A stretch of 54,110 nucleotides of DNA from Penicillus capitatus. Taxonomy: Eukaryota; Plantae; Chlorophyta. The first letter of the stretch is position 1, and the number at the start of each line of letters is the position of its first letter. Positions 22,020 through 54,110 of this stretch are shown here, one piece after another. The translations under genes were made by a program, and so were the position numbers. The stretch spans positions 185,866 to 239,975 of the forward strand of contig OZ287715.1 in assembly GCA_965649825.1 (NCBI GenBank), in the 5' to 3' direction. The notes below the pieces were generated by a model. It was given only the letters and a program-made list of their open reading frames with translations, did no database searches and had not been told where the DNA came from.

Positions 22020-22693
22020 CTACAGTATCTCAGAGACGCTGAACTCTTTCGTCGATGGCGCCTCCAATGCAGAAAACCAGTCGGATGCATGGGTGGGCAA
22101 CAGTCCGATGGAATTCAGTTTGTAGATTCCGAAGATCACCGCTGCAAAGTGTATCAAACAATACATCAACCGAGGTGTTCTCACATCCAAGAGTCCCTCT
22201 GCATCCGGCTTGAACGCTGCATGCATCTCACTCTTTATCACACATTGATACAATCCAGTTTACCATCTCTTGAAGTTAGGATGGCCTGAAGCGACGTGGC
22301 AATGCCACTGAACGTCGTCACCAGACTGAAGATCTGAATCGTGTTGGCGCTCATAAACATCATGAAACACAGCACGCCGACTTGCTTCCATGGAGCCAGA
22401 GCTCTGCTATTGAGTGCCTAATGCAGAACACGCCAATCATCTCACTCTTTTGAATCCATGCTCACACCTGCTGGCGTTTCTGAATGTCTAATTCTTTGCG
22501 TTTGCTCGTGGTGATGCTACTCGAGGCCTAGACAATAGGACTGTCAAGGGGAAGACAGCAGACAGGTGTATTGTTAAGTGACCGCTTCTTTGAGCGTTTG
22601 AGCTGTGAAACCAGGTGGATTGGGTACTTGTCTCAGAGCGGCACTTCCAGCTGCATCGTCAAACGCCACGCGCCAGCGATCGAAACTGGACAT
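22020..22693 (-). CDS. EMC4: ER membrane protein complex subunit 4
   Basis: Spliced: MSSFDRWRV...NPPGF...ALAPWKQVGVLCFMMFMSANTIQIFS...YKLNSIGLLPTHASDW. Confidence 0.9.
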
Positions 22694-22731
22694 CGTCCCG
22701 TGCACAATGGCATCGATTTTGCGACGCGTTA

Positions 22732-25700
22732 ATGAAGTCTGTGGCGTCGGTTCGAAGGATCGGCCTGACGCGGCCCTGCGTCGCCACGGTGGCTCGAGGC
22801 TACCGTGGACCACACTCTCGACGACTCGAGCGCCGCTCGATCCACGTCTCCCAGCCAAAACAGATGTCGCCTTGTCAAGGACAGACGGAATCGCCGTTCA
22901 GGACACACGCCTTCTTTGAAGGGATCTCCAAACTTATGGGAGGAGATGCTGGCGAAAAAACGAGCAAACAATATCAGGCACCGTCACATAAGATCACCGA
23001 AAATGGGATCTGATTTGGAATGATTCTTCCCTCTAGCCAAGGGTCGATGCCATCAACGCCTTGGAGCCAGAGATGCAGAAATGTACGGACCTGGAGCTCC
23101 AGCAGAAGACCGATCAATTCAGGAAACGACTGCAGGGAGGCGAAACGCTGAACGATATCTTGATCGAAGCCTTTGCCGTGAAAAAGCATCCTTAGTGTCA
23201 AAAAGAGTGAGAAGTGTGATCTGGACATAGGTTGTTCGAGAAGCGTCGCTGAGAGTTATTGGTCTGCGTCCCTTCGATGTTCAGCTCATCGGCGGAATGA
23301 TTCTGCACGAAGGCATGCTGTCGTACAATGTTACTCATCTCACTCTTTCTGTTTTCAGGAATGATTGCAGAGATGAGCACAGGTGAAGGGAAGACATTGG
23401 TTTCGGTCTTGCCTGCTTATCTCAACGCCCTCACTGGCAAAGTGCTCTTCATGACTCGCTGTTCTCCGGCAGTCTGAGGCAACGACCATCTAGGGTGTGC
23501 ACATTGTGACGGTGAATGATTATTTGGCGCGACGTGACAGCGAATGGGTGGGACAAGTCCATCGTTTCTTGGGATTGGAGGTCGGTCTGATTCAGCAATC
23601 GATGGAACCGCTCGACAGAGTAGCCGCCTATGGAAAAGACATTACCTACGTTACCAATAGCGAACTGGGTTTTGATTATTTGCGTGACAATCTGGTGCAA
23701 CAAGAAACGGAACTGGTGCTGAGAAATTTCAACTTCTGTATCATCGACGAAGTGGATTCCATTCTCATCGACGAGGCCAGAACGCCGCTCATTATCTCGG
23801 GACCAGCCGATGAGCCCACAGACAAATATAACAAGGCATGGATCTTAGCACCATGCTCACACATGTCACTCTTTTTTAGGCAGCGCGTTTGGCCAAAGCA
23901 CTTGTCCGAGATGAGCATTACACCGTGGACGAAAAGCAAAAGAACATCCTGTTGACGGAAGAGGGGTACGAAGCTTCGGAGGAGGTCCTACAGGTGACAG
24001 ATCTTTATGATCCCCGTGAGCAATGGGCGTCCTATCTCATCAATGCCGTCAAGGCAAAGGAACTGCAGATTCGAGATGTGAACTATATCGTCCGCAAGGG
24101 AGAGGTCATCATTGTGGATGAGTTTACGGGAAGAACGATGCCGGGACGTCGATGGAGTGATGGCCTGCATCAGGCCGTCGAGGCAAAGGAAGGTATCAAG
24201 ATCCAGGAAGAAACGGTGACCATTGCCTCCATCTCTTACCAGAACTTTTTCAGGATCTTTCCCAAACTCGCCGGGATGACAGGGACAGCCGCAACGGAGG
24301 CAGGAGAGTTTAAGAATATCTATCAACTGGAAGTGATGGTGGTGCCAACGAATGAGCCGTGTGAGAGAGTAGACCATTCAGACGTGGTGTTCAGTGTCGA
24401 GGAGGGAAAGTGGAAGGCAACTGTTGCCGAGATCAAAAGAATGACCAAGGCAGGACGACCCGTATTGGTCGGCACGACATCTGTCGAAAAGAGTGAGAGT
24501 CTCTCTGAGATGTTGACGGATGCTGGCGTCGCGCATCAAGTGCTGAATGCCAAACCGGAGAACGTTGAACGAGAGTCCGAGATCGTGGCGCAGTGTGGCC
24601 GGATTGGATCGGTAACGATTGCGACGAATATGGCAGGCAGAGGGACAGATATCTTGCTCGGAGGCAATGCCGAGTTTATGGCCAGACTGAAGCTGAGAGA
24701 ATTCTTGATGCCACGTATCGTGAGTCTTGTCGACGAAGAGGGATCCGATGCACGGCTTCGGCAGAAGCCGACATGGAAAGCATCTCCTGAGCTCTTTCCT
24801 GTGGAACTGCCGGAGGATATTCAGAAGAAAGTGATAAAGGCGGTGGACTATGCGTGTGAGAAATGGGGAGAACGATCGTTGACAGCTCTGGAGGCCGAAG
24901 ATCGTTTGGCAGTTGCTGGGGAGAAAGCGCCAACAGATGACCCCGTGGTTCAGGAACTGCGAAACGCATTTCAGGCAGAGGAGTCGTCAGTTAAGTGATA
25001 TCCCGTGTCAAGACAAGTGCTTTAGGCCATTGAATCGCTGTACAAGACATATACAGAAGAGGAGAAAAAGACAGTGATCAAGCTTGGCGGTTTGCATGTC
25101 ATTGGGACGGAACGGCACGAGTCCAGGCGCATCGACAATCAGTTGAGGGGACGCGGCGGTCGTCAGGTGAAGGGTCCATCCAATTGGTAATGGCCTTGTG
25201 CAGATTACGAATGTCGCTTAGGGAGATCCCGGAAGCACGCGCTTTTTCCTAAGCCTCGAGGATCCTCTGTTTCGCATCTTTGGCGGCGATCGGCTGAAAT
25301 CATTGATGACGGCCTTTCGTGTGGATGATCTTCCCATCGAGTCAAAGGTCTTGACGAGATCGCTCAACGAAGCCCAGCGAAAAGTCGAAGCTTATTTCTT
25401 CGATATGAGAAAGCACGATCAAACATGACATCCATCACCCATGATGTGACACTCGTTTCGTAGGAATCTCTTTGAGTACGATCAGGTGCTAAACACGCAA
25501 AGGGACAGTATCTATGCAGAAAGGAGACGGGCATTGTTGGCCAAAGACATGATGCCAATCTACGAAGACTATTCCAAGAAAACGATGGATGACATCTTGG
25601 AGGTCCTGTCACATCTCTTCTGCTACGGTCTTGATGATGCTCATGCGTCCTTAGGCAAATCTGGACCCCACGTTGCCTCCTGAAGAGTGGACGCCGTATC

Positions 25701-26254
25701 TGTCTTCCCTTGCTGACAAAATCCAGCAATACTGTCATTTCCTGTCGGATGTGGACGGACAGAAATTGGCCGATGAGGCACGAGGAAGCTACGAAAACCT
25801 CAGATCCTACATCCGGTTCCGCGGCGTACAAGCCTATTACGAAAAAGTCGATTCCCCTGCATTCTGGTCACTCTCTCACTCTTGTCTCACTCTTTAGCGA
25901 CGCATCGTCGACCACAAGTGTCCTGGATTGATGGCAGATCTCGAACGGTACTTCTTTCTGTCGCAGACCGATAATCTGTGGAAGGAACATCTACAAGCCA
26001 TCCGTTTTCTCCAGCAGGCCGTCGGATTGCGTGGCTACGCCCAGAGAGATCCACTAACAGAGTTCAAACTGGAAGCCTACAATCTCTTCCTCGACATGCA
26101 ATGCCGCAAACGGCGAAACACGATCTACACCGTCTACGTCTTTGAGCCTGTCGATCAAAAGACCGTCGAGAAGAACATCGAGGAGTTTAAGGAACGCAAG
26201 AGACGCGTGAAAGGCAACGGAAAGCGTATCAAACAGATCTCCAATCAAGCATAA
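22732..26254 (+). CDS. SECA1: Plastid preprotein translocase SecA with transit peptide, 10 introns
   Basis: [93 protein letters not shown]. Confidence 0.97.
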
Positions 26255-26457
26255 GATGTTGTGTGGCATTAAACATTCTTTTACCGAAAGATCCATGCTT
26301 GCCTCAGAGACTAGTAGAAATCATCATCGTCTTTCAGGAAGAAATTCTGCATGCATGGCACGTCTCTGTTCCTTTCCGCTCCCACTCGATTCTCCCTGAG
26401 GTAGATTGGATGGGCGACGTGGGAAAGAGTGATTGATGTACCGTGATCAGTGACACT

Positions 26458-27495
26458 CTACAGATCGGCATCGTCCTCTTCCATGTCAGGAAGGGGCGCA
26501 TTCGCAGCGGCGGTTAAGTCTTGTTCGTTCTTCAGCATCAGCTCCTGATCAACGATGAGCTCAGGTGGTGCCAAGGCAACTTCCTCCACAAAGATAAGAC
26601 CGCCATTCCTTCATGCACAGCAGCATGACTCAGAATACGGCTTTGCGTCCAAAGGTCGTCTCTTTCATCAGCAATCGAATATTATCCTCATTGCACGGCA
26701 TCGGATAACCGCATCGTTTATCATCATGGAAGAGTGAGAATGTGTGAGAGGGATCTTACCCTGTGAGTTTTCGAGCCAAGTAGAGGAAAGGCTTCTCGAA
26801 ATTGTAGTTGCTCTTGGCAGAGAGTTCAATGTACTGCAGGTTCTTTTTCCTGTGGAACGTGATCTGTTTCGGCTTCACTTGACGATTCTTAACATCCACT
26901 TTGTTTCCGACCAGCACCATCGGGATATTGGGACACACTCTATGACCATCCCACAACATCACACTTTCTCATTGTCTGGCAAATGGGTGGATGGTGCCTG
27001 CAGAGATCTCGGTGCCACACAGGGACATTCTTGTAGGTCACACGTGAGGTGACGTCAAACATAATAATGCCACAATGCGCATAGATGTAGTAGCCATCAC
27101 GCAATCCACCGAACTTCTCTTGACCCGCGGTGTCCCAAATATTGAAGACGAGCGTGCCGCAGTTTGTCGAGACTTTGAGAGGACGCACTTCGACGCCGAT
27201 CGTCGCTGCATACACATGACGTCGTGTCAACGCTGTTTAGGTTCCGAGGACACGTGTGCGTACGTTCGTATTTCTTCTCGAATTCGCCGCTTAGGTGACG
27301 CTTGACGAATGTGGTCTTGCCTAGACGCATCAACACCGCGAACGTCATCTCAGAGAGCAAGGCGTGTGGACACACCCGTTCCGCCGTCGCCGACGAGGAC
27401 GAGCTTAAACGAAGGCGGTTCGCCAGCTGCGACTGGTGCTTGAGCCTAAACGGCCTCAGAAATGTTTCTGGCGTGGGCAGGACGACGCACACCAT
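26458..27495 (-). CDS. RAN: Ran GTPase
   Basis: Spliced: [33 protein letters not shown]...[17 protein letters not shown]...GNKVD...[19 protein letters not shown]...acidic tail MEEDDADL*. Confidence 0.98.
26628..26730 (-). ncRNA. Probable intronic box C/D snoRNA in the last Ran intron
   Basis: Intron is about three times the usual length. C box ATGATGA (26721-26727), 11-nt guide GATGCGGTTAT directly before D' CCGA, C'-like ATGAGGA, CTGA boxes at 26668-26671 and 26630-26633. The guide is complementary to AUAACCGCAUC, recalled as conserved in plant/green-algal LSU rRNA. Confidence 0.55.
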
Positions 27496-28209: not shown

Positions 28210-31200
28210 ATGGAGCCACTTCAACTTGAGGCTCTGGACGGTTCCGAGCCCATCGCTCTGCCGCCAGCCATCAAAGTCTGTACCTTAGCGCAAGACGCGG
28301 TACGTGACCCATGCAACGAAGAAGACGCGTCTGAGGGTATCTCGTGGATGACGTGACGTGTGTGTAGGATTTGGAATCGGACTACGCTGTCTCGCCACAC
28401 ACGCCACTGCTCTCGACCGCAATGGAAGAAAACTGCTTCGCCAGTGGTGCGTGATATCTGCCTGCTGAATGAAGAGGACGACCAAAGTGGGAGATGCATT
28501 CAGGGCGAAACAATGTTGGTCAGTTAGGAGTCGGTGCACAAGGCGACGTCATGGAGCCACAACCCGTACAGGTAATGCATAGATGTGACGAGGGCCCTTG
28601 GCAGCTGTATGTGCTGTTGGACAGGGGGTTCGCCCGTGGGCATTGGTAAGTTTTGGGGCGTATCATGCGTGTGGTATCAGCTGCGAAGGCGAACTGTCTT
28701 CATGGGGTATATCTAATAAAGGTCAGTTAGGGCATCAAGATACGGAGTCTCGAGAATTGCCGGAGATCGTGGATCTGTTGCGTGACCAGCCAGTGAAGAA
28801 TGTTGCATGTGGATGTGAACACACCGTTGCTGTGACAGAACATGATGTTTATGCATGGGGGTCCAATGAACATGGCCAACTAGGACAAGATGATGGAAAT
28901 AAAGCACAGATGCTGACCATTCCTCGCCCAATTCGCATTCTACACGAAAAGATGGTGACGCAGGTGATCTGTGGCAAGTATCATACATTGGCTGTCACGG
29001 CACAGTCCCATGTACGTCTCGATGCATGGAGTGTGGATAGGGAATGTGTGCGATATGTGTGATGTCAGGTTTATGCTTGGGGAGCTAATAATCATGGTCA
29101 GCTAGGACTTGGCGATCGAGTGGATCGACGGATGCCGACGATCATCGAATCTTTATGGGCCCTTCCTGTCAAGCAGCTTGCAGCAGGAGATCACCACAGC
29201 TGCGCTCTGACGAGATCCGGTTTTCTCTTCACGTGGGGACTTAATCAGCAGGGACAGTTGGGACAGCCACCCGATGCAGAGCATGCCGCTGTGCAGGCAG
29301 CCAGTCGTGGCGGATCTTCTCGGAAACGCATGTCCAGACATGTCAATCAGAAATATTTGTCGGTAATGTTGGAAATGGGTATCGCCAAAGAAAAAGCAGA
29401 ATTGGCATTGATCGAGACGAAGAACGGGGGTGTGGAGTTGGCTACGGAATGGCTCTTTTCTGGTCAGGAGGCTGTCATTGAGAGAAAAACACCTGTGGAC
29501 ACTGGTCCACCTCCTCAAGACGACAAGCAAAGTGATCGTCTGGACGACAAGAGCGTCCTTGTCCCCAGGAGAGTTCCAATCAAAGTGACCACCCATTCTT
29601 TTCTCTGTACTTAAGGATCTTGGCCAATGGGCGGCGTTTGGACACAGGGCGTGCGGTTTGTGGCTGCTGGAAGTCATCATTGTGTGGCTGCGACGCAATA
29701 TGCCGTATACAGCTGGGGTGCCGGCGAGCACGGACAGCTTGGACTGGATGATTTTACGAGTCGAGACCTCCCCAAGAAAATAACATCATTGGAAAAGACC
29801 GATTTAATTCAAGTCGCCTGCGGTGCCAGTCATTCTATCTTCCTGACAAAAGAAGGCCTCATCTACGGAACCGGTGCGAATGACTGCGGTCAGTTGGGTC
29901 AAGTGGAGGATACAGAGAACGAAACCTCTTGTTATGCCACGCCCAAGTTACTGAAACTTCCATTCATTCCCCTAAAACATCCCAGAAGTCAGAGAAAACA
30001 GCCGATCGTTGTCAAAATCAGTGCTGGAGAAAACGCCAGCAGTTTTTTGACCTCATCTCCAGACGAGATACCAGACTCGACGCCAACTGGACTATGGGAG
30101 AAGCTACAGGCCAGTATACAAGGAGTGAAAGAGAGCGAGAAACGCCCAACGACAGAATACAGTTCGCTCATGCGACTACTCACGGCAGCCATTGAGCTCG
30201 TCTTTGGCTCCGCTGCTGCCCTCAGCGCTACGTTTGGGTACGAAGACCACGTCGGTATGAATGTGCAAAAGCTCAACCAAGTTCAAAAAGAAATCCTGAG
30301 TCTCTGTACGGACAAGTAAGCCGAACTGCGCCATCTATGGCAGTCCATGAGTGGCTGTTGTGTGTTCTAGATATCTGAGTGATCCCTGTTCAAAGCTCAT
30401 GAAGTCCATGGACGATGTGTGCTCTATCAGTATTTACAATGCAATGACCAAAGCTGCTTCGTATTTGGTAGAGGATCTCTACAGTCATTTGAAACTGCTC
30501 AATAATCCAGAGCGCGCTCAAGTGCTGTTGGCTGCTGTTCAGCATCCTCTCCTGAACGAATCAACATTTGCAAAGTCGATCCTTCCGCGTCTGTGCCAGA
30601 CAGTGCTGAATGCGCCGTCCGGTACGCGACATCTCCTGATCAAATGGTGGGCCGATTATCCGAGGACGCTTCTGGAGGACAGTGTGATCAAACCGCTGCA
30701 GAATTACGTCACGAAGGAGCTCATGGCGACAAAGAAGTTAACCGTAAATGTGATGAATGCAATCAAAGTTCTGGCGAAGGTGGAAGAAGCGAACGATATA
30801 GGTAGAAAACTGCCGCCGGAATCTTTCTATAATCAGCTCATCAGTGAGAAGATGGACGTGTTAGATCATTACATTGCCTGGAGGCAAAGCCACGATCATC
30901 CACAAAAACGCTCCGGACAGGACGGGCCCTTCTCTTTCTGCAGCTATCCCTTTTTGCTGGATGCCAGAGCCAAGAGCAAACTCTTGCACATGGAAGCCAA
31001 GCTGCAGATGGAGCAAACCGTCGCGCAGTCACGTTTAGAGAATGTCTACGGTCCATTCAAGAAATCCAGAAGAGAAAACGACGATGCGCGCGTTCTGCCG
31101 GATCGCAAGGTAAATCTCAAGAAGGAAGAACAGGAGCACAAGAAAAAAAGACCAAACAGCGAATCTGGTCGTACACGATTTCGAAGAGAAAGTGGAACAG

Positions 31201-32496
31201 GAATCCGCAATCTTTTCTACAACATCTTACGTTCCGGTCATGGTGACAGAGGCGGCGATGAAGAGGCAGATGGCGGCGGACCGAGCGATCGCTCAGATTC
31301 CAGTCTAGCACGAGCAGGTTCTCTGCAGCTTCCGAAACCGGACGATAGTGGTATCCCTGCGACACACATGGATATGTGTATCATCCGTGTACGACGCAAT
31401 CATCTCGTGGAGGATGCCCTTAACGAAATCGCACGGCAGTTCCGTAAAGATCTCTTCAAACCGTTGCGTGTTCAGTTCATCGGCGAAGAGGGTATCGACG
31501 TCGGCGGTGTCAAGAAAGAATTCTTTCAACTCCTGATCCATGAACTGCTGTCCCCCGACTACGGAATGCTCGCCTATCAAGCCGAATCCAAAACTTATTG
31601 GTAATGCCGTTGATGCATGGATTGTGTGAGAAAGAGTGAGAAATGATGATCTTAGGTTCAATCCATCATTGATGCTGCAAGGGGAGAAATGCGAAGATGA
31701 TTTCTTCCTGATCGGCCTTGTCTTGGGATTGGCCGTATACAATGGTGTCCTCTTGGATTTCCCCCTCCCCCTGGTCCTCTACAAGAAACTGCTCAATCAA
31801 GAAGTGACCTTAAGAGACTTAGAAGAGATGCAGCCGACGGTTGGCCGTTCGCTACACCAACTGCTGCAGTACGATGGCCCCGGATCCGTTGAGGACGTCT
31901 TCTGCCAAAACATGAGTATCAATGTGGACGTCTTCGGAGATGTGAAGTCCATTCCGCTCAAACCGAACGGAGAAGAGGTTCCAGTGACGGAAGAAAACAG
32001 ACGAGAATACGTCGACCTTTATGTCTCCCATGCACTGGAGCGCTCCATTCAGGGACCCTTTGAAGCGTTTTCGAAGGGACTCAGGACCATTTGCGGAGGA
32101 CCAGCGATTCAGCTGTTCAATGCACAGGAATTGGAACGTCTGGTTTGCGGAAATCCTCGGTTAGATTTTGCAGCATTGGAAAACAATGCACGTTACGATG
32201 GTGGCTTTACAAAAGATTCCCAAACGGTGAAATGGCTGTGGGAGATTGTCTCGGAGTTTACCATGGAGCACAAGAAGCTCCTGCTCAAATTCTTCACTGG
32301 AAGCGACCGGGCACCGATCGGAGGACTGGGCAATCTCAAATGTGTCATCCAGAGAAACGGCTCAGATAACAAAAAACTCCCGACATCTCACACCTGCTTC
32401 AACACGCTTCTCTTGCCAGAGTGCACGAGCAAAGAGGATCTCTTACAACGTCTCCAACTAGCCATTATGAATGCAGAAGGCTTTGGTTTGGAGTAG
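28210..32496 (+). CDS. HERC-like E3 ubiquitin ligase: RCC1 repeats with inserted UBA domain plus HECT
   Basis: RCC1 repeats (WGISNKGQLG, ACGCEHT, WGSNEHGQLG, AAGDHHS, ACGASHS); UBA (LSVMLEMGIAKEKAELALIETKNGGVELATEWL); HECT (FIGEEGIDVGGVKKEFF, LLKFFTGSDRAP, LPTSHTCFNTLLLP). Confidence 0.93.
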
Positions 32497-33113
32497 GAGG
32501 CATTCTCTCTGTTCATTCATTGCTCATTGCTGTGTATCTTGCTGAATGTGATCTGGCATTTCATTGGGTGTGCACGCACACGATTTACTTGACAATGCTT
32601 GTTTTCTCGATTTGTTTTTAGCGTTGCATTTCGATCCTCAATGGGAACTCAACTTCATGGGTCAGATGTCCTGCTCCTCCTTCTCCTCCTCTACCTTATG
32701 TGACCCTACTTACTTCCTTACTCATAAGGATGACAGAGATATGTGTCATTCTCTGCGACATGCCATCCCGAATGGTGTCGATTTATCCGGACGTATCTAT
32801 ATACCTTCGATCATCTCCCACCAGGCAAAACACAGCAATTACAATAAGTGTGGAGCCACTCCTTGTGCAATTTAGACAACGCATTTCACCAGACATGACA
32901 GATCTTGTCGATCACAGCAGTGGATTTCTCTCGACCGTGCATGTGATGCATGTAAGCTTTATGAGACAGATAATCTCTGTGTAAGTCTTGTTGAGGAAGC
33001 ATACTCCATAAAGACATGAAACAAGGGATTCTTCGCGATATCGAGGGAATACTGTGAAATGCTAATAAAAAGTGTGAACAAGGTGTGTGTTGTGTGATAA
33101 GGATATTGTCTCC

Positions 33114-42555: not shown

Positions 42556-44170
42556 TCAACCGTATTTCTTCAAGATGTCTGGAATCTTGGGCAGTTTTTG
42601 CGTGAACAGTCCTGTCAGATCTTCTCCCGCTCCACGAAGGGCACTTTGTTCTCCGACGGCGAGTTTGTCCCATGGCTTCTTCTCTCGCAGATCAAAGGCG
42701 CCGAGGTCCCAGTTCATTAGGGATCCAAAGATGTCGCCAATCGTGTCGTTTGCCGACAAGCCGTCGAGGCTCCCGCGAAGAATGTTCGTTCTCCTGGGGA
42801 AAGTGTTTGAGAAGAGGACGTTGTTGATGATGCTCGGATTCAGGAGGGAGGAACCGTCGAAGGTGTGCAGCACGGCATGCACTTCGTCGACATCGAATTT
42901 CTTTTCCTTGCATTCCTAAACACATACCGACCGTCTTCAACCGATGGCGAACGCACAAACACGCACTCTCGTTTTGAACATGGCAGGAGTCGTGTGTTCC
43001 GACACGAACATTGACGGCGTTTTGGTGTATGTCAGTGATGGTTTGTTGCAGAAGAGTTTGAAATCCCAGTCCAGAAACGCATTGCGGTAATCCAGAGCGC
43101 ATTCGCCCGTTTTGAATGTGAGCTTGAAGCCGGGTCCTAGACCCAACGCCCGTCACGACGAAACGCTACGTTCCGTCAATACCACCTCGATACTCAGCAG
43201 CTTTGCGCGTCGGCGGCGTGAACTCTGCCGAATCGCACAACGTATCTTCCAGCAGGGTTGCTTCTTTCGAAAGCACGCCGAGTCCCTTCATAGAGCAAGA
43301 GTTCCATCTTTCCCACTCTGCGCTCGTCAAAATCGTTTGCCTGTTTGACGAGGAGGATATTGCGCAGGATGGTTTTGTACGTTTCGGCTTCGGATTGCTC
43401 GAAGGCGTCTTTTAAGTTGAGCTTTCCCGAAAGAATTCGGTCGAGATTTGAGGTGACCACTTGACGCAAGTCCGACGCAAAGGCAGTCGTTCCTGCAGTA
43501 GCCGCGATTCCCGCATTCAACACGTCTTGCAGTGGATTGTCGCCGACAGGAATGTCCAAAAGATTGAGCAGCTTCGAAATCAAACGCTTCGACTTGTCGA
43601 ACTTCGACCCCGTCCGTTCATGCTTGGCTGAACAACGGCGATATCTGTTTGCCCAAAACGCACAACGCTGTCGGTCTTACCGTCTTCGACGTCGTCGACG
43701 ATGCCTGCCACAAAGAGACCGCGTTATGGCGGATGTCTACGGAATGGTCTCGCACTTGTTGTGTCGGTTTTCTTGGTGGTATCGTATCCAGAAGCGACGG
43801 CGTCCGCCTTAGCGTCGAGGATGTCATGCTTGCCTTTCTTGAGCGAACTCAATAGAACGCCGTCTTCGGAAGCTGCGCTTTTCGGTCAGGAATAATGCGA
43901 AAAAGATGGAAAGGCACTCTTTAGATCTCTCCGGGCCGCTTGGAAGTTCTTCACAGATGTCTGACCGGAGAAGCCTGTGAGAGTAAGGTGAGCGTTTGTG
44001 GATGGAGCACAGCATTCGAGTGCTGCAACACGTGCCTGACATGATATGTTCGACGCCGTCTTGCCCAGAGACGCCATGCGCCGCCAGGCAGGCAATCCAT
44101 GAGCACAGTAACAGAAATCGCCGTGACACGCCCGTCGCCCTCGTTCCTTTTCCCATCCATACTCTGTCAA
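42556..44170 (-). CDS. Hypothetical, possibly secreted, multi-exon protein
   Basis: Consecutive coding-like ORFs (43194-43583, 42937-43146, 42556-42882) and an upstream signal-peptide-like stretch FLLLCSWIACLAAHGVSG. Linkage of the pieces is inferred. Confidence 0.45.
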
Positions 44171-44380
44171 TCATTGTCGTCAACAAACGACGCGACGCGA
44201 CGCGGCGTAAGCAAACGAATCGTTGCAGTGGGACAACCGAGAGCACCGATACGTTCGTTCTCTTGGACGCGCCGAGCAGAACACACAAAAGACGTCCATG
44301 TCGTCGAATTCCTTACATCTTATTCCATCGCGTCTCGCTGTCTGCGTCGGGTTCGTCGTCGCAAGGTTCTCGACGTTTTT

Positions 44381-45052
44381 TTAACTTCGCTTACGAGCGT
44401 CTTCCAGAGTATCGTCGCTTCCAGCCATGAGTGTCGGCTCCGTTATGTCATCGTCCAGTGTCGACGCTCCTTCCGTTGGCGTCTTATCTTCTGGCGATGT
44501 CGTCGTTGTCGATGCCATTGCCTACATCACACCGACCGCCGCCTCACATAACATCACTCACGCCACACGTCACATCACATCAAATCCCAGATCTGCGAAG
44601 TCGCCAGACGACAGGCTCGTTTGCTTCACCGTCGATCCTTCCTCTTCGGCAACGGCATCGCGCACAGCATCCTCAATCGTATCTATGTGCTCGGCAGCTT
44701 CCTTTCCGCTTCCTTCGGCCAACGAAACTGCATCCGCTTTATCAACCTGCCGTGTCCATCTCGCATTCATTTTGCCTCATGCGTCAAGCAAGGCTACCGG
44801 GACGAGTTGTGGATAAAGTGGCCCTTTGCATGGCTCTGCCCTTTCCTCTGCACACCGTCGCAGTTTCGAACCTTCGCGCATTACCGGTGTGTCCGTCGTA
44901 CCTGTCCGCACCCATTTCAGCACCTTCATGCGTTTCTTCGTCGACGGGGCGTTCTCTTCGCCGACGTACACCCACGCGCGTTTCCATTTATGCACATGTC
45001 CGTGAAAACTTTGCACGCCGTTATGACGCTGAACACTACTGCGCGTCGTCAT
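44381..45052 (-). CDS. BCL7-like (plant BDH-type) SWI/SNF subunit
   Basis: N-terminal GHVHKWKRAWVYVGE...MKVLKWVR matches BCL7 KVRKWEKKWVTVGD...LRIYKWVP, followed by an acidic disordered tail. Confidence 0.65.
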
Positions 45053-45115
45053 CAGATGCACACAAACAGACCATTCAACGCATTCTATCCCTTAAATCGC
45101 TCAATGCTGCGTCTC

Positions 45116-45709
45116 TCAGAACAGCAGCTTAGCAAAGAACCACTTATTCGTCCCGCTCTTAAACTTCTCCAGCAGCTTCGTATTCGCCAACTACATACAC
45201 TCAGTCAGCATCGCATTCGCCAGGATCACTCTTAGGAGCGAACGATCTGTCACATCACCTGAATGCTTTCTTTCTTCTGCGTTTTGTTCGCAAGGCAATC
45301 GATACCGATGGCATTCTTGAGGTCGAGATCCAGACTGTAACGCGTTGGCATCAGCTGATTGAGATTGCACACTTTGATGAAGCACTGAAGTTTACACTTC
45401 TTCTCTTTCTTCTTCTCCGAATCTTTCTTCTTGATCTGCAGAGACACCACACGACCGTCTCAATATGGAGAGACCGCTTCTTGCCAGGGGATCCACATAC
45501 TCGGCCGGGTTCACGGCGCAGTCCGACGACAAGACAGTGTGGAAAGGCCCGAGTAGAGTGCCCGTCTTCAAAGACTTTTAGCACCACTGCCTTCTTCCCT
45601 GCGTATTTTCCGGTCGTCAAGATCACGACCTTGTTGGCCTGACAGACATGGCGAGGTGTGGCCTTCTTCGACCCTTTGCCTATTGCATTACTTTGAAAAT
45701 CTTGCCCAT
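45116..45709 (-). CDS. RPL27: 60S ribosomal protein eL27
   Basis: MGKIFK|ANKVVILTTGKYAGKKAVVLK...FIKVCNLNQLMPTRYSLD...KFKSGTNKWFFAKLLF*. Confidence 0.95.
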
Positions 45710-45860
45710 ATCGACTGGCGTTTCTCAGTGCCGTTGATGAAGGGCGCCGCAATGTGCGTCAGTCCGTTCGTCGCGGTAATGCCGTCAGGTGTTAGTACGT
45801 TCGGTGATCGGTCGATCGATCCGTCGTGCAGATTTCTCCGGGCGGCAGCCTCGTTCGAAC

Positions 45861-46370
45861 ATGCATGCTCTCACCTCGGCGATCTCTTTGCCGCGTTTGG
45901 TGGCCCAAGGTCGACGACCTGTCGCACACCTCCGCAAACGGCCAGCATCACGGCGTTCGCATATCGCCTTCCCGATAAGGCAGCGCTCTTTGCGCGTGCA
46001 GGCGGACTCAGGAACGCCCAGCAGTGATCCCGAAAAGGTATATGTCTCCTTTGCCTCCTCGACCGACACCCTCCTGAAGGACTCGGAATACGTTCCACCG
46101 GATGACGAGCCCACATTGGCCGGGAAGATCTTTGGCTCTTACCTTCAATTAGGCGTCTGGATCGTCGTGCTGAGCTTTGCTGGATACAAAGGTATTCAAC
46201 AGGTACTTCTCACTCCATCACAAAGTGTGAGATCTCATGAGATGATGTGACAGGCGCAAACCGATCCCTCATCTGTCGGTCTTCTCCTAGCCCCACCTGC
46301 CGGCGCTCTCTTTCTCATCATCTCTTTTCTGTTCTATCGATTCTGGGGCAAAGATAAGGACGACGCCTAG
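45861..46370 (+). CDS. Small plastid-targeted two-TM hypothetical protein
   Basis: Ser/Arg/Ala-rich transit-peptide-like N-terminus ending LRVQA; two hydrophobic segments; one GT-AG intron. Confidence 0.55.
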
Positions 46371-47334
46371 ACTGCACGCACGTTTCCGATAACTTTTACA
46401 TAAGATTTACTCTTCAGTCATCCGTTGTCCCTAACAAATCGGGTCTACTTGAGGATTGTTCGTTCTAACGAGAGGATCAAAGGCTGCCGCCACATATCCC
46501 ATCCACTGTCTGCAAATAGAGATCCACAGACAGCTTTCTTACATACAGGCCGATTCCCACCCGCACCGTCCGCAAATTGTCACGTATATTAGGCGAATGC
46601 TTAGAGATAGATGTAGGTAGGTACGTACAATCATCATCATCTATGGGCAGATGGATTTCTTCTCGGCTTATAGCACATCAGGACAGCGCTCATGGATATG
46701 GTATACAAACAAACAAACAAACAACAAAGTGAAAAAGACATTCCTCTTCAGCAGAAAAACAATTCGTTCATAGAATGTACAGTCCTACGCCGCACAGTAT
46801 TGGCGTTGAATGAGGACTTCTACGACTCAGTTGAATGTATGACGCGGCGTAGAATGGCAATATGACCACATGTCGCGACAAGGAATACAAGGAACAAACG
46901 ACGTCGTTGTCGAGCCACATGCACTACGAAACTTTGCATCGCGACACATGGGATTGCTCGCACGACTCGGTGGTGTACCACACAAAACACTCGAGGCTCC
47001 TTCACACCACAGCGATGCTAACTCTTCTTGGGCCTCCCATGACAACGACGTCGTCACAGAGACGCTACAGAAGAGGCCGTGAAGGCGGGTGAGGATAAGA
47101 GGGTGTACGTGTTGACGGAGGGAGGCGAGGGAGTCGTTGCATCCCCAAAAGACGACGGCCATGTGTTATCGTTGCCGTCGTCGCAGTGTTTCAGCGATTC
47201 TGAGAGTTGACTTCGAGGCTTCGACATGGCGACGGAGATACACTGACGTCGCAGGCTGTGAAGAACAAGGCAACGTCACGTCACATCATGCTCTCTTGCA
47301 CCGTCTGTTTCGCAGCGAACGAACATACTCTTCG

Positions 47335-48412
47335 ATGCGTACGATTTTGAAGTGTCAGCTCTTTCTGGCATTGACCCAGACGGCTTTCGTTCTGGGAAGT
47401 GTCTATTTCAAATACTCTGTCAATCATGTCGATCGACGGCACCACATCAACCCCGTCGTCTTTGCCTTTATCCGCGAGAGCATTGCTGGGAGTATGATGG
47501 GACTTCTGGCTTACTTAAGTACGAACAGCGTGCCTCGAAGGGGCGACGCCCCAAAGCTTTTCTTTCTTGGACTGGCACTCTACTGCAATCAGCTGTTCTA
47601 TATCATGGGCGTGGATATGTCGGGGGTCGTCGTCGCCACATGTATGCAGCCAGCGATTCCGGTATTTACTGCCGCTATGGCTCTGACCCTCGGTATGGAA
47701 CAGCCATCGCTGTACAAGACCTTCGGTATCCTGATGGCCTCGGCTGGATCCATCTGCATGGTTCACGCTTCTCTCCTGATTGACAGGGAAATGTCACATC
47801 ACGAGTACTTAGGTCGCTGGCGGCGGATTCGATCAAAGCAAGGTGGTCAAAACGGAATCAGATGTCTTGCTCGGCAATATCCTGCTCTTTCTCAACACTA
47901 TCGCCATGGCACTCTATTATATCTATGCTAAGCCCGTGTTGGCAATCTATCCACCCATGGCTGTCGCTGCCTGGGCATATATCATTGCGGCGCTGCTCAT
48001 GGGCTGCACAGCTGTATGGTATAATCGATTCTATCAGCATACTTGGTATCTGCCAGAGGCAGCTTACGGCCCTCTCCTCTACTGGATCGTCGTCTGTTCC
48101 ATCTGTGGCTACTACATCATCGCATGGGCTATGAAACACTTGCCCTCCACTCAGGCGAGACCTGCCTTCCAGTTTCCTACCTCTGTATGTCATGTGATGT
48201 GACAGGTGGCTGCTTTTCAATGCCTGCAACCACTGATAGGAACAACACTTGGTTTCATGATCCTCGGGGAATCGCTAACCGTCTGGGATCTTGGGGCTAT
48301 CGGTGTTATCCTTGGCCTGTTCTTTGTCAACAGAACCATCAAAGAAAAGCCCAAACCCAAAGTATTGCCCAAGATCCACATACATCGACCTGTCTTTCAA
48401 AACGTTAGCTGA
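47335..48412 (+). CDS. EamA/WAT1-like drug-metabolite transporter
   Basis: Multiple TM helices in two EamA repeats (NPVVFAFIRE, CMQPAIPVFTA, FQCLQPLIGTTLGFMILGE). Confidence 0.9.
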
Positions 48413-48590: not shown

Positions 48591-50118
48591 TCAGATGCGA
48601 ATTCCACGGATCGCTGTCATCAGAGGCGATTCCAGCTGCTCGTCGTCATCCTCGTCCGATGACTTGTTTGGATTTGAACGCATCAACATTCGGAACTCCT
48701 CGTAGTCGATCGTCCCGTCCTTGTCAATGTCGGCCGAGTTCAGCAAAGTACTGGCGCTGTCTGACAGGTGAAACTTATCTAGCACCGTTTTGAGCTCGGC
48801 CTCTGTGATGCGACCGTCGCCGTTGAGATCGAAAGCGGCAAAGGCTTTTCTCAACAGTGCCTCCTTCTGCAGCTTAGACAGATGCATCGTCGCCGCCACA
48901 AACTCGTTGTAATCGATCGAGCCGTTGCCGTCCACATCGGCAATGTGCATCACCGCCTCCAGTTCCTCCGGTTTAATACAATGACCCCAATCGGACAGCG
49001 CATCGCGAAGTTCTGTCACTGTGATGTATCCACTCGAATCGGCATCGATACTCTTGAACAGGCGACTCATGCCCACAATCTCTGAGGGGTCTAGGTTCTG
49101 TCCAATCACCAACATAGCGGTCTTCTTCATCCGATTCATCGCAGCGAAGCCTTTGATGCGTTCGATGACAAAACTGTCGATCGGGTCATCCGATGCAGCC
49201 TCTTTCTGCAACCATGGATGTGTGAGAATCTCGGCTGCGGTGGAGCGCCTTGCTGGATCCATCACACAGAGTTTTCGAATACAGTCCTTGGCACCTTCGG
49301 AGAGCGTTGGCCATGGGGCACTGCTGAAATCCAGTTCCCCTTTCAGCACCATTCGGAAGATCTGATCTTCGGTGTCGCCCCAGAAAGGCGGCAGACCAGA
49401 CAACATGATGTAGAGAATCACACCGAGACTCCACATGTCGGCCTCGTGACTGTAGTTCTTTTTCAGCACTTCAGGAGCGACGTAGTAGGGACTGCCCACC
49501 AAATCTCTGAATCGATCACCGTGCGTAAAGAACATGCCCAATCCAAAATCCGTCAGTTTCAGTTGCTGCGTTTCAGGATCTTTGGTCGTGAGGAGAAAAT
49601 TCTCCGGCTTCAAATCGCGATGCATCACACCGAATTCATGACAATGACGAATGACATCGACCATCGTTCGAAAATAGACAGCCGCCTTTTTCTCAGTGAA
49701 ATTCCCCGCCTGGACAATACTGTCAAAAAGCTCGCCGCCGCCACACAGTGTCATCGCAATGTGGACACTGTGTTTGTCTTCGTGTGTCGACTAAGCACGC
49801 ACGAACGAACGCACCAACATCAGTATCCACTCACGTCGAGAGCTGTGCCTTGCTGAGCACCTTAATTGTGACGATGTTGGGATGACCGGCGACGTGGTTC
49901 AGCATAGCGACTTCGCGTTTCACATCTTCGACATCTTCTTTACAGACGAGACGGGACTTGCTTATCGTTTTGCACGCGATCGCATGACCCGTCTCTTTAT
50001 TCACACCGCGTCGCACGACGCCGAAGGCACCCTTTCCGACAACCTCGTTCAACTCGTACAAATCAGTCAGACTGGGCTCGGACGGATCCTTGTCCAGTAT
50101 GCTGTTCAAATAGGACAT
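48591..50118 (-). CDS. Calcium-dependent protein kinase (CDPK/CPK)
   Basis: GKGAFG, HRDLKPENFLL, DFGLG, GSPYYVAPE, autoinhibitory junction FAAMNRMKK, four EF hands (DADSSGYIT, DVDGNGSID, DLNGDGRIT, DIDKDGTID). Confidence 0.97.
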
Positions 50119-50232
50119 TGCGTAACGTCGACCCGAAAATCAGAAATCGAGACGGCAGTAGGTCGGATGACACGTACAACGTCCGTACGCTTTGTTGATA
50201 CCTCTGGAAAACGGTTCCAACAAAAATGCCGT

Positions 50233-51256
50233 TTAATGGCGTGTCTTGAAACGTCCTTTCGTCCGGATGACTCCCCTCCTGACGATACCATGTCCACGGG
50301 GCATCTCTGCGGCTGGATAAAAAGAGTGAGATGCTGCAGAAAAGAGTGAGAGGAGATGTGTACCTTGACGTCGATGTGCGAGTGGTTCGATTTTGAGTGG
50401 CTGACTGCCGAAGGTGTAGCCGTCCAATGTGAGTGCTGCTTTGGCCGCAGCCGGGCGTTTGAAGGCGACGAATGCATATCCTTTGCTGTCGCCCGTTTTG
50501 TGATCTCGAACGATGCGCCAGTTGCGCACCATGTCTTTACACAGTGGCACCAATGCTCCGTCATTGAAGATCTCGAGCAGGGCTTCATCTGAAACGGCGG
50601 CATCCAGGTGTTTGACGCAGATGGAATCGCGCGGGGAGAAGTTTCCTGGATCGATCGTCGCCTTCGTCCTCCGTTCGCGAAAACGACGTTCCCCTGCCAT
50701 GTCGACGCGCAGCGCTCGGCCACGAAACTGCAACGTCTCTGGTCATGCCCATCGACGCAAAAGAGGGCGGTACCTGCGTCATATTGAGCTCCAGAGCGGC
50801 TTGGGCCCCTCGTGGGTGTCGAAAGACGATATAGGCATTGCAGATACCGTCATGCCGGAAGCGCTTGTTATGCATGAGGATGCGTTTCGGTGCATGATCG
50901 CCAGCAACGGCTGGAACTGAGCGCAGCCGAACGGACTCAATATCGCCACATCTGGCAGAAGCAGTCACTCAGACACAAAGATCCCCAAGGCAAACGCACG
51001 AAGCGAAGTGACGTTTCAGTTTCTTCGGGAGCTGTTTGATCTCGAGCGAGAGATTCCCAACGAAAATGGTACGCTCGTGTACCATCTCTGGTTTTTCCTT
51101 CACCGAAGGAGAGCCTTTGGCGAGAGGCGGGGAGGACTGGGAAGGACGTATTGGTGTCAAGTCCGTCTCTTTGATATAAGCGCCTTTGTCGTCGAAGAGT
51201 AAAGCCGTCGCTGCATCGCGTCCTTCTTTGGGAAAGATGTCGTCGAACAGAGACAT
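50233..51256 (-). CDS. NOP12: Two-RRM nucleolar protein, RBM34/Nop12-like
   Basis: RTIFVGNL...LKRHFASCGDIESVRLRSV...CNAYIVF...FRGRALRVD...KGYAFVAF. Confidence 0.78.
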
Positions 51257-51297
51257 GGCACGTCACATCAGGCATCTGCGCGGAGCTGAAACGTTGC

Positions 51298-51760
51298 ATG
51301 GTACTACTGAGCGCTTTGCCGAGGACAATGAGTCGATTTTTGACATCTGCAGGCCACTGCTGTCCTTGTGGGTCTGGGCGTCGCAGCTGCGGCACTCTTG
51401 AGTCGCTCTGCCGTCCAAGCTTTCCAGTCTCTGCGCTATGGACCTCAAAAATTCTATAAGGCAAGGATAGTGCAGTCACATCTGTCCCATCATATCTGTG
51501 CAGGGAGGATTTCTGCCAGAGATGACCCGTCGGGAAGCAGCTCTGATTCTGGGATTACGTGAGAGTGCCGTCGAGGATAAAATCAAAGAAGCACATCGGC
51601 GCATCATTATTGCGAATCATCCCGATGGAGGTCACACTTTTCACAATATCTCACTCTTTCTCAGCCGCCTCTAGGTGGAAGCAGCTACATCGCCGCCAAA
51701 GTGAACGAAGCCAAAGATATGTTATTGGGCAAACGGCAAGGAAAGAACTCGGCCTTTTAA
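51298..51760 (+). CDS. PAM18: Mitochondrial import motor J-protein Pam18/Tim14
   Basis: FYK|GGFLPEMTRREAALILG...HRRIIIANHPDG|GSSYIAAKVNEAKDML. Confidence 0.93.
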
Positions 51761-51854: not shown

Positions 51855-52625
51855 TCACTTCCTCTCACTCTCTTTGTCGGCCTCGCCCCACGAGATATCA
51901 CAGGACTCTTCATCCGCGCACGATTTTGGAGATGCGCTCCAGTAATGCATGTCTTCGATGCCATCGGTGGATCGGCCGGTGAGAGGAAGTCGGTATCTCG
52001 CCCATACATTGTATACAGCATTGGCTAAGCGCTCGGCCGGTTTCCACGAAGTAAAGGCGTAGACCCATCCCAAGCCAACGGCATCATAACATCGCCTGAA
52101 CACTTCGACCCCTTCGATGACATCTCCGTCTGGCAAGATACCGTGAATACGTCCCATGGCCTGCCAAACACCACCTCACCATCTACCGTATGTCTCGCAT
52201 GCGATGGACTTTGCCATAGGAGATGCCGCTGTTCATCTCCGGATCGTATTCTGGAGTGGCAATGTTGACGAAGGAGATCTTGCCGCGACCAGCATCGCGT
52301 TCCTTGAGCATATCGATCTCTTTGAGACATAGCGGGCACTCTCCATCATACAGCAACCGAATATCCCACAGCCTTTCACTATCTGCGTGACCAACACCCT
52401 CGATGGGTCACGCCTCGCCACCACAGACGCATGTCAAACCTCGCACCACCGAGGCGTCTGAGGTGGCCGTACGGAGAGAGAAAAGCACACGGCTGTTGAG
52501 AAACGGCCTGGTGTGTCTCAGCGTTCGAGCACCGAGCTGCTGCCGTGCCTGTCGTGCAAGAGCTGCCTGTCAACATTCCACCATTCTTCACACCACCTTT
52601 TAACCGGTTGTTCCCTTGCCTGCAT
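51855..52625 (-). CDS. DCC1-like thiol-disulfide oxidoreductase (DUF393) with organellar targeting peptide
   Basis: IRLLYDGECPLCLKEI...AMGRIHGILPDG...GVEVFRRCYDAVGLGW. Confidence 0.85.
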
Positions 52626-52793
52626 GATAACGGCGACGACTGACGATGATCGCAAATGTAGAGTTCGTCTTTACGGGACGCGGCGAGATAAGGAGCTCAG
52701 ATGAACGCACGTAGGTAACAGCTATGGCGCAGAAACATGTTTTTAGTCAAGGGTTTATTATGAAATGCGTCATGTCTTATCATCATCTCTGGT

Positions 52794-54110
52794 TCAGAAT
52801 TCGCCGTCTTCTTCTCTCTCGGTCACTCTTTCGAGAAAAGTGCGCGATTTTAAAGAGTGACTCGAGACAGATGCATGACTTCCTTGGTAGTCCTCCAGAA
52901 CCTCCAATTCGCCAGAGAGAAACTCCAGGCGTCGCAGAATCTTCCGTTCCATTTCGTGGATCGTCTGCTTCATCTCTTTGGTCGTGCTCACCAATCGCGT
53001 CTCCGTCAGATCCAGACGATCCCAAAGACTGTCCAAATTCACTGCTTTCTTTGGACTCAGCTTCAGAATATGCACATAGGTAGGATTCCATCGACTGATA
53101 AGCCACGATGGCATCGTCGTCTCTAGCTCATCAATAATCTGCGCCTTACTGCAGAGATTCCACAGATGCTCGTCTTCCATCACCTATACAGCACTTGTTT
53201 GCGTTCTTGGCCGTGGAGATCCGTCTGACCTTAGAGTAGGAATCGGTCATGATGGCAATGAGGAGATTGAGAAGCATGATGGCCATCACTGCTTCGTACA
53301 GCACGAAGAAGGCCACCGAGATAATGGGATCCGGATCCTTGGTATCGTAGAAGATATCGGTGTCGAATCCACCCAACATAAAACTGAACATCGTCACCAC
53401 GGCATGCCACACTTCGCTGAATTCCTATGACCCATGCACACATGTGATCTCACACTAATCACACTTTTGTGCGACGGACATCGACTTCCTTGTTCTTGCG
53501 GAACAGGATGTGGAAAGCCAAGGCAAAGGAGAAGAGTGTCAGCAAGATGAACAGCAGAAACCACTTGACATCCGAAATGACGACCTTTAGCGTATCCACC
53601 AAAGAACTCTTCGCTGAGGCAAATACTCTACACGCAATCACACTCTCACTCTTTTGACGTTGTGTGAGAGGCAACGAGATACGAACCTTGAGAAGTATTG
53701 AACCTTTGCAAAGAGGAAGATGCATTGCACGGCCATCAGCACCGAAAACCACTCTGCCTCGACGCCCTGGCGGGAGATGTAGACGATGCAGGTGATAAGC
53801 TGAACACTGTAGGTCACGATGTCCAACAGATTCCACATAGAGAACCAATTGAAGCCATAGTCCAGCATGGTGTTCGCCTCGATCAGCACAAAGGGACACA
53901 TAAACAGTACGGAGAGAAGATTCAGAATGATCTTGGCTTTGCCAGACGTGGATTTCTCCCAGACATCTCCATAGTCTAAGCCCAAGTCCTCATTCTATCA
54001 ACAACAGCAATTTCCTTGCACGGAGACGTGGGCGACGACAGGGGGACTTGGAAGAGGATGATGAAGACGGTGTAGGACACCAGCCAGCAGAGGTAGAGGA
54101 TGAACTCGTA
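52794..54110 (-). CDS. TRP-like cation channel, 3' part (5' end lies beyond the window)
   Basis: TM helices (WFSMWNLLD, KWFLLFILLTLFSFALAFHILF), pore loop (TMFSFMLGGFD), S6 IMLLNLLIAIMTDSY and TRP-box-like LWNLCSKAQIIDE. Confidence 0.85.

Follow-up and report, generated by a model that had tools for sequence, protein, structure and literature searches.

The 11-base word TCTCACTCTTT occurs 11 times, on both strands taken together, in the single 54-kb stretch of DNA that was analysed (the window), and 10 of these exact copies lie within nine short introns of six genes (the NOP12 intron being putative), five in the direction of the transcript and five against it. The window derives from a chlorophycean-like green alga present in a metagenome. 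The explanation tentatively preferred here, to which somewhat less than an even chance is given, is that the word is a lineage-specific branch-site/pyrimidine word, the antisense copies of which arose by orientation-blind DNA copying and were tolerated only in introns. Both the branch-site function and the copying mechanism are proposed from the sequence itself, and are set out below against the alternatives.

Intron models and composition

The introns of SecA were set by spliced alignment to homologues. For EMC4, the spliced protein gave one unbroken Pfam EMC4 match, and for PAM18 the DnaJ match ran across the exon junction. The spliced form of the TRP channel gene aligned through the junction to TRPV3 with 48.8 bits (44.6 for the alternative). 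The open reading frames flanking the HECT intron differ in frame, and its GT...AG is kept in relatives. The NOP12 intron was treated as putative, being a 51-nt, in-frame, stop-free GT...AG segment. A window-wide catalogue of introns came from a gene finder based on dynamic programming, which applied a prior on intron length and favoured YAG, and was validated by homology: of 16 introns checked in this way, 14 were exact and all 16 overlapped a true intron. The splice dinucleotides of the catalogued introns were nearly all conserved in the close relative L006.

The catalogue comprises 85 introns of 51.4 +/- 6.2 nt with the form G[T/C]...YAG, and there is almost no consensus past G[T/C] at their 5' splice sites. 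GC-AG introns make up 16%, and donors switch between GT and GC among relatives. The introns show no CT richness (G 27, T 28, C 23, and A 22 percent). Branch-like tetramers were enriched 2.2- to 2.3-fold over shuffled intron interiors (TCAC, 35 versus 15.6, z 5.2; TGAC, z 5.0; TGAT, z 5.1), and no enrichment over the same shuffles was seen for TAAC or TCAT. The pentamer GTGAG was found 14 times within introns and never at an intron start. A search of Rfam gave no RNA family in the window or in four related loci.

Distribution, orientation and turnover of the word

Dinucleotide shuffles of the window gave a mean of 0.06 exact copies of TCTCACTCTTT and a maximum of 1, against the 11 observed. Nine independent word sites fall within 4.4 kb of intron sequence, compared with 23.9 kb of remaining sequence not assigned to confident exons (p ~5e-8); p is ~9e-5 if only 8 kb of the non-exon sequence is truly non-coding. 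No copy was found in the promoters or intergenic DNA of the window. The initial annotation had counted 10 exact copies, all in short introns; its ten intronic copies, six genes and 5:5 split between orientations were reproduced, and the total was raised by a further copy in an exon of SecA (Table 1). The near-matches already noted at 25874, 26729, and ~15667 were confirmed. Eight one-mismatch copies were present in the window, and ~2 would be expected by chance according to our own estimate, scaled from the expectation of 0.06 for exact copies. The presence of 11 exact copies and only eight one-mismatch copies fits recent copying. Seven of the nine motif introns hold one isolated copy with no CT repeat alongside, and tandem word units occur in SecA intron 10 (25847-25897) and in the NOP12 intron.

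Table 1. Copies of the word in the window and the introns that hold them
Feature	Position	Strand	Location
Exact copy, antisense to EMC4 (- strand gene)	22226..22236	+	Intron 22217-22263 (47 nt); 27 nt from 5' splice site, 9 nt from 3' end
Exact copy, antisense to EMC4	22440..22450	+	Intron 22418-22467 (50 nt); offset 17; 22 nt from 3' end; TGAT immediately after
Exact copy, antisense to SecA (+ strand gene)	23202..23212	-	Intron 23178-23230 (53 nt); offset 24; 18 nt from 3' end
Exact copy, sense	23338..23348	+	SecA GC-AG intron 23313-23358 (46 nt); 10 nt before 3' splice site
One-mismatch copy TGTCACTCTTT, sense	23864..23874	+	SecA GC-AG intron 23836-23879; 5 nt before 3' splice site
Exact copy, SecA exon	24488..24498	-	Encodes VEKSES; absent from the initial annotation
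One-mismatch copy, then exact copy (25885-25895), sense	25874..25895	+	3' end of SecA intron 25847-25897; exact copy ends 2 nt, one-mismatch copy 13 nt, before 3' splice site; third, degenerate unit upstream of the pair
One-mismatch copy TCTCACTCTTC, sense to Ran (- strand)	26729..26739	-	Intron directly after Ras-domain exon
Exact copy, antisense to RCC1-HECT gene (+ strand)	31631..31641	-	Intron 31601-31655 (55 nt); offset 30; 14 nt from 3' end
Putative in-frame GT...AG intron, RRM (NOP12-like) gene	50313..50363 (51 nt)	-	Two exact sense copies, 50341-50351 and 50321-50331, the second ending 8 nt before AG
Exact copy, sense	51649..51659	+	PAM18 intron 51631-51674 (44 nt); 15 nt before 3' splice site
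Exact copy, antisense to TRP channel gene (- strand)	53644..53654	+	Intron 53628-53686 (59 nt); offset 32; 16 nt from 3' end

The two orientations differ in position, in near-matches and in conservation. Sense copies present a branch-like CUCAC followed by the pyrimidine run UCUUU, and from the end of the 3'-most sense copy in an intron the distance to YAG is 2, 8, 10, or 15 nt. This CUCAC matches yUnAy, with a C where WCTRAY (PMC2483917) needs a purine. All three one-mismatch copies inside confirmed introns are likewise sense, those at 23864 and 25874 lying near the intron 3' end, and no antisense one-mismatch copy was found in the catalogued introns. The branch-point-like character that the initial annotation saw in the pyrimidine form is thus supported for the sense copies by their distance to the 3' splice site and by the sense near-matches. 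The antisense copies are situated mid-intron, between 0.45 and 0.69 of intron length, with 9-22 nt left to the 3' end; TGAT or TGTGAT adjoins all five and TCA lies upstream in three. This narrow zone may reflect a positional constraint of their own.

Comparison with relatives showed that for six of the nine motif introns (EMC4 introns 1 and 2, SecA introns 2, 3, and 10, and the HECT intron) an orthologous intron occupies the same position in L002, L005, or L006 and does not contain the word. Among the introns with an antisense copy, both EMC4 introns and SecA intron 2 are present in L002 and L005, in each case without the word. The L006 contig begins inside SecA, and the comparison of antisense copies with this close relative covers one copy, that of HECT, where 6 of 11 positions match against a mean intron identity of 0.80. 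The HECT intron aligns base for base with that of L006, with substitutions and one 2-nt gap and no inserted element. Similar sense words were found in relatives: CCCACTCTTTT at the 3' end of SecA intron 3 in L002; two copies of CACTCTTTT on the - strand adjoining the Ran gene of L002, sense to Ran by position; and TCGCACTCTTTAG at the 3' end of SecA intron 10 in L006, where a 10/11 match is not unusual at 0.80 identity (p ~0.3). Copies of the word appear to turn over fast between close relatives.

Explanations for the two orientations

A plain, sense-only branch point was rejected, as five of the 10 intronic copies are antisense. The initial annotation had taken strand symmetry as an argument for a DNA-level role. 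This symmetry is real. Some DNA-level component behind the word is likely on the sequence evidence, since a purely RNA-level branch point cannot account for five exact reverse-complement copies.

In the preferred explanation, TCTCACTCTTT would be the sharpest form of a 3'-end signal in ~51-nt spliceosomal introns, combining the branch-site-like CUCAC with a short pyrimidine run. The sense word would probably act in the RNA, where U2 and 3'-site factors would use it to locate the 3' splice site in consensus-poor introns. The five antisense copies would be young, lineage-specific flips of the same 11-17 nt DNA word, written into pre-existing introns by a process blind to transcription direction, such as short-patch templated repair, template switching, or conversion. 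Their persistence in introns only may have two reasons, namely that exons and small intergenic regions cannot take such copies, and that the RNA form GAGUGAGA beside UGAU falls in, and would suit, the branch-site zone. The branch-like tetramers UGAC, UGAU, and UCAC are partly mutual reverse complements. The motif introns showed no significant clustering, whether grouped by gene (p 0.20) or ranked along the window (p 0.52), a result that speaks against template switching on a purely local scale.

An unlikely alternative is that the antisense form AAAGAGUGAGA has an RNA role of its own, as a purine-rich intronic enhancer or as an internal 5'-splice-site-like GUGAGA drawing U1/SR-type factors, with the sense form providing branch/pyrimidine signals. 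The internal GTGAG occurrences, the weakness of the real 5' sites, and the narrow zone and class-specific flanks of the antisense copies are consistent with it. Two unrelated RNA functions, however, need no exact reverse-complement 11-mers; antisense near-match variants are absent from the catalogued introns, and the word is kept neither in the HECT intron of L006 nor in the L002/L005 orthologues.

Slightly less probable is that the word is a site for a sequence-specific double-stranded-DNA factor, bound in introns in either orientation and acting in chromatin, elongation, or co-transcriptional splicing. The exact 11-bp identity among copies, their equal split between orientations, the scarcity of degenerate variants, and the lack of RNA structure all suit such a factor. 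It would leave unexplained the sense copies hugging the 3' splice site, the sense-only near-matches, and the absence of the word from promoters and intergenic DNA; the quick turnover of copies between close relatives and the copy in a conserved coding exon of SecA, placed there by chance of codon choice, also count against it. The symmetric DNA-binding or nucleosome signal of the initial annotation does not predict the asymmetry of the two orientations in position, near-matches, and conservation. A similarly low probability is given to the word marking introns regardless of orientation, either as an aid to the definition of consensus-poor ~51-nt introns (through double-stranded DNA/chromatin or a dedicated factor pair) or as the trace of intron-specific DNA patch-writing.

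Pairing of sense and antisense copies as RNA, within or between pre-mRNAs, as a means of regulating splicing was judged very improbable. SecA introns 2 (antisense) and 3 (sense) do provide a perfect inverted pair of 11 bp, separated by 125 nt, and in the TRP intron CUCUCAC can pair with GUGAGAG. Folding of the nine motif introns, however, was in no case better than that of their shuffles (z -0.94 to +1.5), and the EMC4, HECT, PAM18, and NOP12 transcripts hold one orientation each. Contrary to the hairpin prediction, GTGA and TCAC showed no excess co-occurrence within single introns (6 introns, Fisher p 0.15).

The proposal that the word is a relic of an intron-generating mobile element (introner) inserting either way has barely any probability left. 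Similar sequence is present in many introns in both orientations, introner families that insert in either orientation are known (PMC9860276), and some relatives have SecA intron 23442-23493 while others lack it, though it holds no copy of the word. The proposal is contradicted by the existence, for six of the nine motif introns, of identically placed orthologues without the word in L002, L005, and L006, by the alignment of the HECT intron with that of L006, which shows no inserted element, and by a similarity of only ~11-17 nt in introns of ~51 nt. The best local alignment scores among the 85 introns were 16-17.5, or ~16-20 nt of ~51, and inspection by eye revealed no terminal inverted repeats or target-site duplications in the intron sequences. 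Pairs of motif copies were also considered as terminal inverted repeats and rejected, as the spans between them take in exons and promoters. A promoter element was rejected as well: each of the copies in EMC4 and SecA is upstream of a divergent neighbour, in the sense of that neighbour, but this reading does not hold for the copies in HECT and TRP.

Just as improbable is a chance or low-complexity product of CT-rich introns, a possibility against which the initial annotation had cautioned: a single step separates the word from a plain CT tract, tandem units are present in SecA intron 10 and the NOP12 intron, and a metagenome scan for pairs of copies no more than 30 nt apart gave >120 CT-rich simple repeats, unrelated and spread over many organisms (and no further loci of this organism), but the shuffled windows, the base composition of the introns, and the isolated copies in seven motif introns speak against it.

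Comparison with known systems

The closest parallel to the sense word is the branch point with its polypyrimidine tract (yUnAy / WCTRAY; U2 snRNP and 3'-site factors), which it resembles in having CUCAC and then UCUUU 2-15 nt before YAG, in introns that are enriched for the branch-like tetramers TGAC, TGAT, and TCAC. In Chlamydomonas, the most frequent branch motif is of the CTGAC type (PMC2483917). The window differs in presenting an exact 11-mer rather than a loose consensus, in having half of the copies on the wrong strand, and in the C that replaces the usual purine of CTRAY. If the sense word is a branch/3' signal, it offers a handle on intron definition in this lineage.

Polymerase-theta end joining and replication template switching copy patches of ~5-30 nt, direct or reverse-complement, usually from nearby. 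The window word is like such templated insertions in patch size and orientation-blindness and unlike them in that the motif introns are not significantly clustered. If the flipped copies do represent short-patch copying, a DNA process can rewrite intron sequence without intron gain, which would bear on the interpretation of introner-like similarity. Introners, described from Micromonas, Aureococcus, dinoflagellates, and fungi (PMC9860276), share with the window related sequence in introns of unrelated genes, in either orientation, with a lineage-specific word; here, however, only 11-17 nt are shared, and the introns are ~51 nt long and older than the word, as indicated by the orthologous introns without it in three relatives.

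The recognition of very short, consensus-poor introns is a question that was raised for the outlier chromosomes of Mamiellales, where BOC1 carries many small introns and no conserved motif was reported (PMC3491373); the small introns of the Ostreococcus outlier region are also discussed in PMC2483917. The window is similar in its many 40-65 nt introns, in having essentially no splice-site or branch consensus, and in being a compact green-algal region with transposons. It differs in that its best protein matches are chlorophycean, the best named ones being to Polytomella parva (MetRS, 76%) and Chlorophyceae CDPKs (66-68%), with no Mamiellales proteins among the top matches. The window represents a second green-algal lineage with such introns, and in it one sharp, intron-restricted word stands out.

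Copies of the word and their placement

An exact search found 11 copies of the 11-base word TCTCACTCTTT in the window, six on the + strand and five on the - strand, against a mean of 0.06 copies and a maximum of 1 in dinucleotide-preserving shuffles. Leaving aside the 23-nt tandem array at the window start, it was the most repeated 11-mer. The initial annotation had listed ten copies as intronic, and all ten were placed in introns here too, the two of the NOP12-like gene only probably; its total was too low, since an eleventh, exonic copy had been overlooked. Its division of the intronic copies into five sense and five antisense, relative to the transcript of the host gene, was reproduced. Over the whole window, 11 copies had no mismatch, 8 had one and 25 had two; by chance, about 2 copies with one mismatch and 30 with two would be expected (our own scaling from 0.06 exact copies). 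The scarcity of one-mismatch relative to exact copies indicates a sharp word family, as expected if the copies are recent or recognition is very strict.

The ten copies occupied nine introns of six genes, counting a putative intron of the NOP12-like gene. Removal of both introns of EMC4 (- strand) gave a contiguous Pfam EMC4 match, and the PAM18 junction was spanned by a DnaJ match. The ORFs on either side of the HECT intron were in different frames, and its GT...AG was conserved in two related loci, L002 and L006. In the TRP channel gene, removal of 53628-53686 gave ...VQYFSRVFAS..., which aligned across the junction to the S4 region of TRPV3 at 48.8 bits; the alternative model with the word exonic scored 44.6 bits and aligned only after the junction. 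Both NOP12-like copies lay within one 51-nt GT...AG stretch, in frame and stop-free, which is a probable intron. On the same strand, the CDPK start codon (50118) follows after only about 195-245 nt (50118-50363), and the stretch could alternatively be part of the CDPK upstream region. Nine independent sites lay in 4.4 kb of intron; set against the remaining 23.9 kb not covered by confident exons, this had p about 5e-8, or about 9e-5 when a conservative 8 kb was taken as truly non-coding.

Motif introns were clustered neither in particular genes nor by their order along the window, and GTGA and TCAC did not co-occur in one intron beyond expectation. All-against-all intron alignment gave a surplus of similar pairs in both orientations, nearly all from motif introns, between which similarity extended only about 16-20 nt. 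No family was found in Rfam.

Features of the window and of the adjoining contig
Feature	Position	Strand	Remarks
23-nt tandem repeat	1-294		13 copies, at window start
40-nt repeat	350-430, again 7557-7637
LINE-type retrotransposon	7548-12525 (about 7.5-12.5 kb)		endonuclease and reverse transcriptase domains
Exact TCTCACTCTTT copy	24488	-	conserved SecA exon, encodes VEKSES
One-mismatch TCTCACTCTTT copies	23864, 25874, 26729		three, sense, in confirmed introns
GTCACATCA/TGATGTGAC, examples	44522-44578, 45191-45258	-
GTCACATCA/TGATGTGAC, examples	48189-48239, 25413-25463, 25603-25654	+
Small gene downstream of TRP	51855-52576	-	presumably a DCC-like thiol-disulfide oxidoreductase (CPLC motif by eye)
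Genes on L004, an ENA contig	L004 1-9875, just past window 3' end		intron-less FtsH, 1685-aa cadherin/Big_9 ORF, FtsK

Introns and their short words

Spliced alignment of homologues to SecA (22978-26307), which is nuclear and of the green-plastid type, gave ten introns, each 44-59 nt long, of which five were GC-AG. Nine of the ten were reproduced exactly by a dynamic programming gene finder that used a prior on intron length and favoured YAG. It also recovered the five MetRS introns for which homologues gave coverage, as well as the CDPK intron's acceptor. The gene finder was run on confident genes and its output was corrected by hand, yielding a catalogue of 85 introns (51.4 +/- 6.2 nt) with 71 GT and 14 GC donors, 48 TAG and 33 CAG acceptors, and a nearly flat base composition. 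Across these 85 introns no 5' consensus was found past G[T/C]; in L006, the splice dinucleotides of nearly all of them were conserved in place. GC-AG introns were unusually frequent in both the catalogue and the homology-verified SecA set, and single donors switched between GT and GC among relatives (e.g. 23313, 23836, 24975, 25413, and 26997, the last belonging to the - strand intron 26940-26997). GTGAG began none of the 85 introns, yet occurred 14 times within introns, for the most part at a distance of 10-25 nt from the 3' end.

Compared with introns whose interiors had been shuffled, TCAC (35 vs 15.6), TGAC (33 vs 14.9) and TGAT (40 vs 17.5) were each enriched at z about 5, and TGAG mildly so (z 2.6); TAAC and TCAT showed no enrichment against this null, and TTAN was depleted. 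TCAC, TGAC and TGAT are branch-site-like tetramers of T-N-A-Y form, and the commonest branch motif of Chlamydomonas is of the CTGAC type (PMC2483917). GTGA was also enriched (49 vs 19.8 expected), in two orientations along with TCAC. As TCA is the reverse complement of TGA, GTGAC/GTCAC and GTGAT/ATCAC are branch-like on both strands, which at the RNA level explains the general enrichment of GTGA and TCAC. Another dispersed word, GTCACATCA/TGATGTGAC, had 14 copies (6 and 8 by strand), was intronic in both orientations and sometimes formed the intron 5' end, as GTGATGTGAC; its behaviour resembles that of TCTCACTCTTT.

Relatives, strains and neighbouring sequence

The best named protein matches (Polytomella parva MetRS, 76%; chlorophycean CDPKs, 66-68%) indicate a chlorophycean-like green alga and not a member of the Mamiellales. 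For loci L002 (Logan SRR33785045) and L005 (Logan ERR14224705), identity to the window was about 62-66% at the DNA level and about 80-83% for the SecA protein; for the closest locus, L006 (ENA ERZ26696514), it was 0.886 over exons and 0.795 over introns. The relatives share the order of the genes and the positions of the introns with the exception of SecA intron 23442-23493. The window and L005 have this intron and L002 precisely lacks it, so that it was gained or lost within the clade.

Orthologous introns without the word were present in L002, L005 or L006 for both introns of EMC4, for introns 2, 3 and 10 of SecA and for that of HECT. In L006 the HECT intron aligned base for base with a single 2-nt gap, and 6 of 11 bases were identical at the motif site; the word therefore arose or decayed there through base changes and not because an element was inserted. 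In L006 the counterpart of the sense copy that closes SecA intron 10 reads TCGCACTCTTTAG (10 of 11 positions), and L002 carries CCCACTCTTTT close to where SecA intron 3 ends and two copies of CACTCTTTT on the - strand beside the Ran gene, sense to Ran by position. No exact copy was found in L005 across the 5.1 kb matching the part of the window with five intronic copies. These sequence comparisons suggest that the sense class is the older and the antisense class the younger, only one antisense copy being comparable with the close relative.

From 15287 onward the window was 99.7-99.85% identical to the metaMDBG metagenome contig ctg339849 (ENA ERZ25074695). Long identical blocks were found together with regions of about 0.3-0.5% difference (28729-34932 and 43760-47064), a mosaic suggesting recombining strains; differences per base were highest in introns (0.39%), with 0.16% in exons. 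The three genes of L004 look bacterial and are joined to eukaryotic sequence, which may reflect an assembly chimera or gene transfer.

Interpretation and known systems

The flanks of sense copies ran into the 3' splice site, the 3'-most copy ending 2, 8, 10 or 15 nt before YAG, and tandem units were present (three degenerate units in SecA intron 10, two in the NOP12 intron). Antisense copies started 17-32 nt into the intron and ended 9-22 nt before its end; TGAT or TGTGAT was adjacent in all five and TCA preceded three of the five, and they showed no tandem units and no one-mismatch copies in the 85 catalogued introns.

We tentatively favour, at somewhat below an even chance, a reading whose function and mechanism we infer from these patterns: the sense word would be a lineage-specific signal, combining a branch site and pyrimidines, for the 3' end of very short introns that are poor in other signals. 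The antisense copies would have arisen recently as inverted copies of this short DNA patch within pre-existing introns, made by a DNA process blind to orientation and tolerated solely in introns, with their complement landing in the branch-site zone beside UGAU. Branch-likeness at the RNA level does not explain the five exact reverse-complement 11-mers. The main rival readings are an independent RNA role of the purine word, which is unlikely, and a double-stranded-DNA binding site, as the initial annotation had proposed, which is quite unlikely. RNA-RNA pairing of the words is very improbable, as no motif intron folded better than its shuffles. An origin in composition or low complexity is hardly credible. 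A paired-copy scan of metagenomes matched solely unrelated CT-rich simple repeats, so that the word is common in CT microsatellites elsewhere, whereas the window copies are mostly single and isolated.

The relic of an introner, also proposed initially, has a negligible probability, and this origin is rejected on the word-free orthologous introns of EMC4, SecA and HECT and the base-for-base alignment of the HECT intron, which shows no inserted element. Two defining features of introners (PMC9860276) were looked for and were absent, which places the word outside that class. The Mamiellales BOC1 introns (PMC3491373), small and consensus-poor, are alike in architecture but belong to a different lineage. 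Ordinary branch and polypyrimidine signals stand, with introners and BOC1 introns, among the closest known systems.
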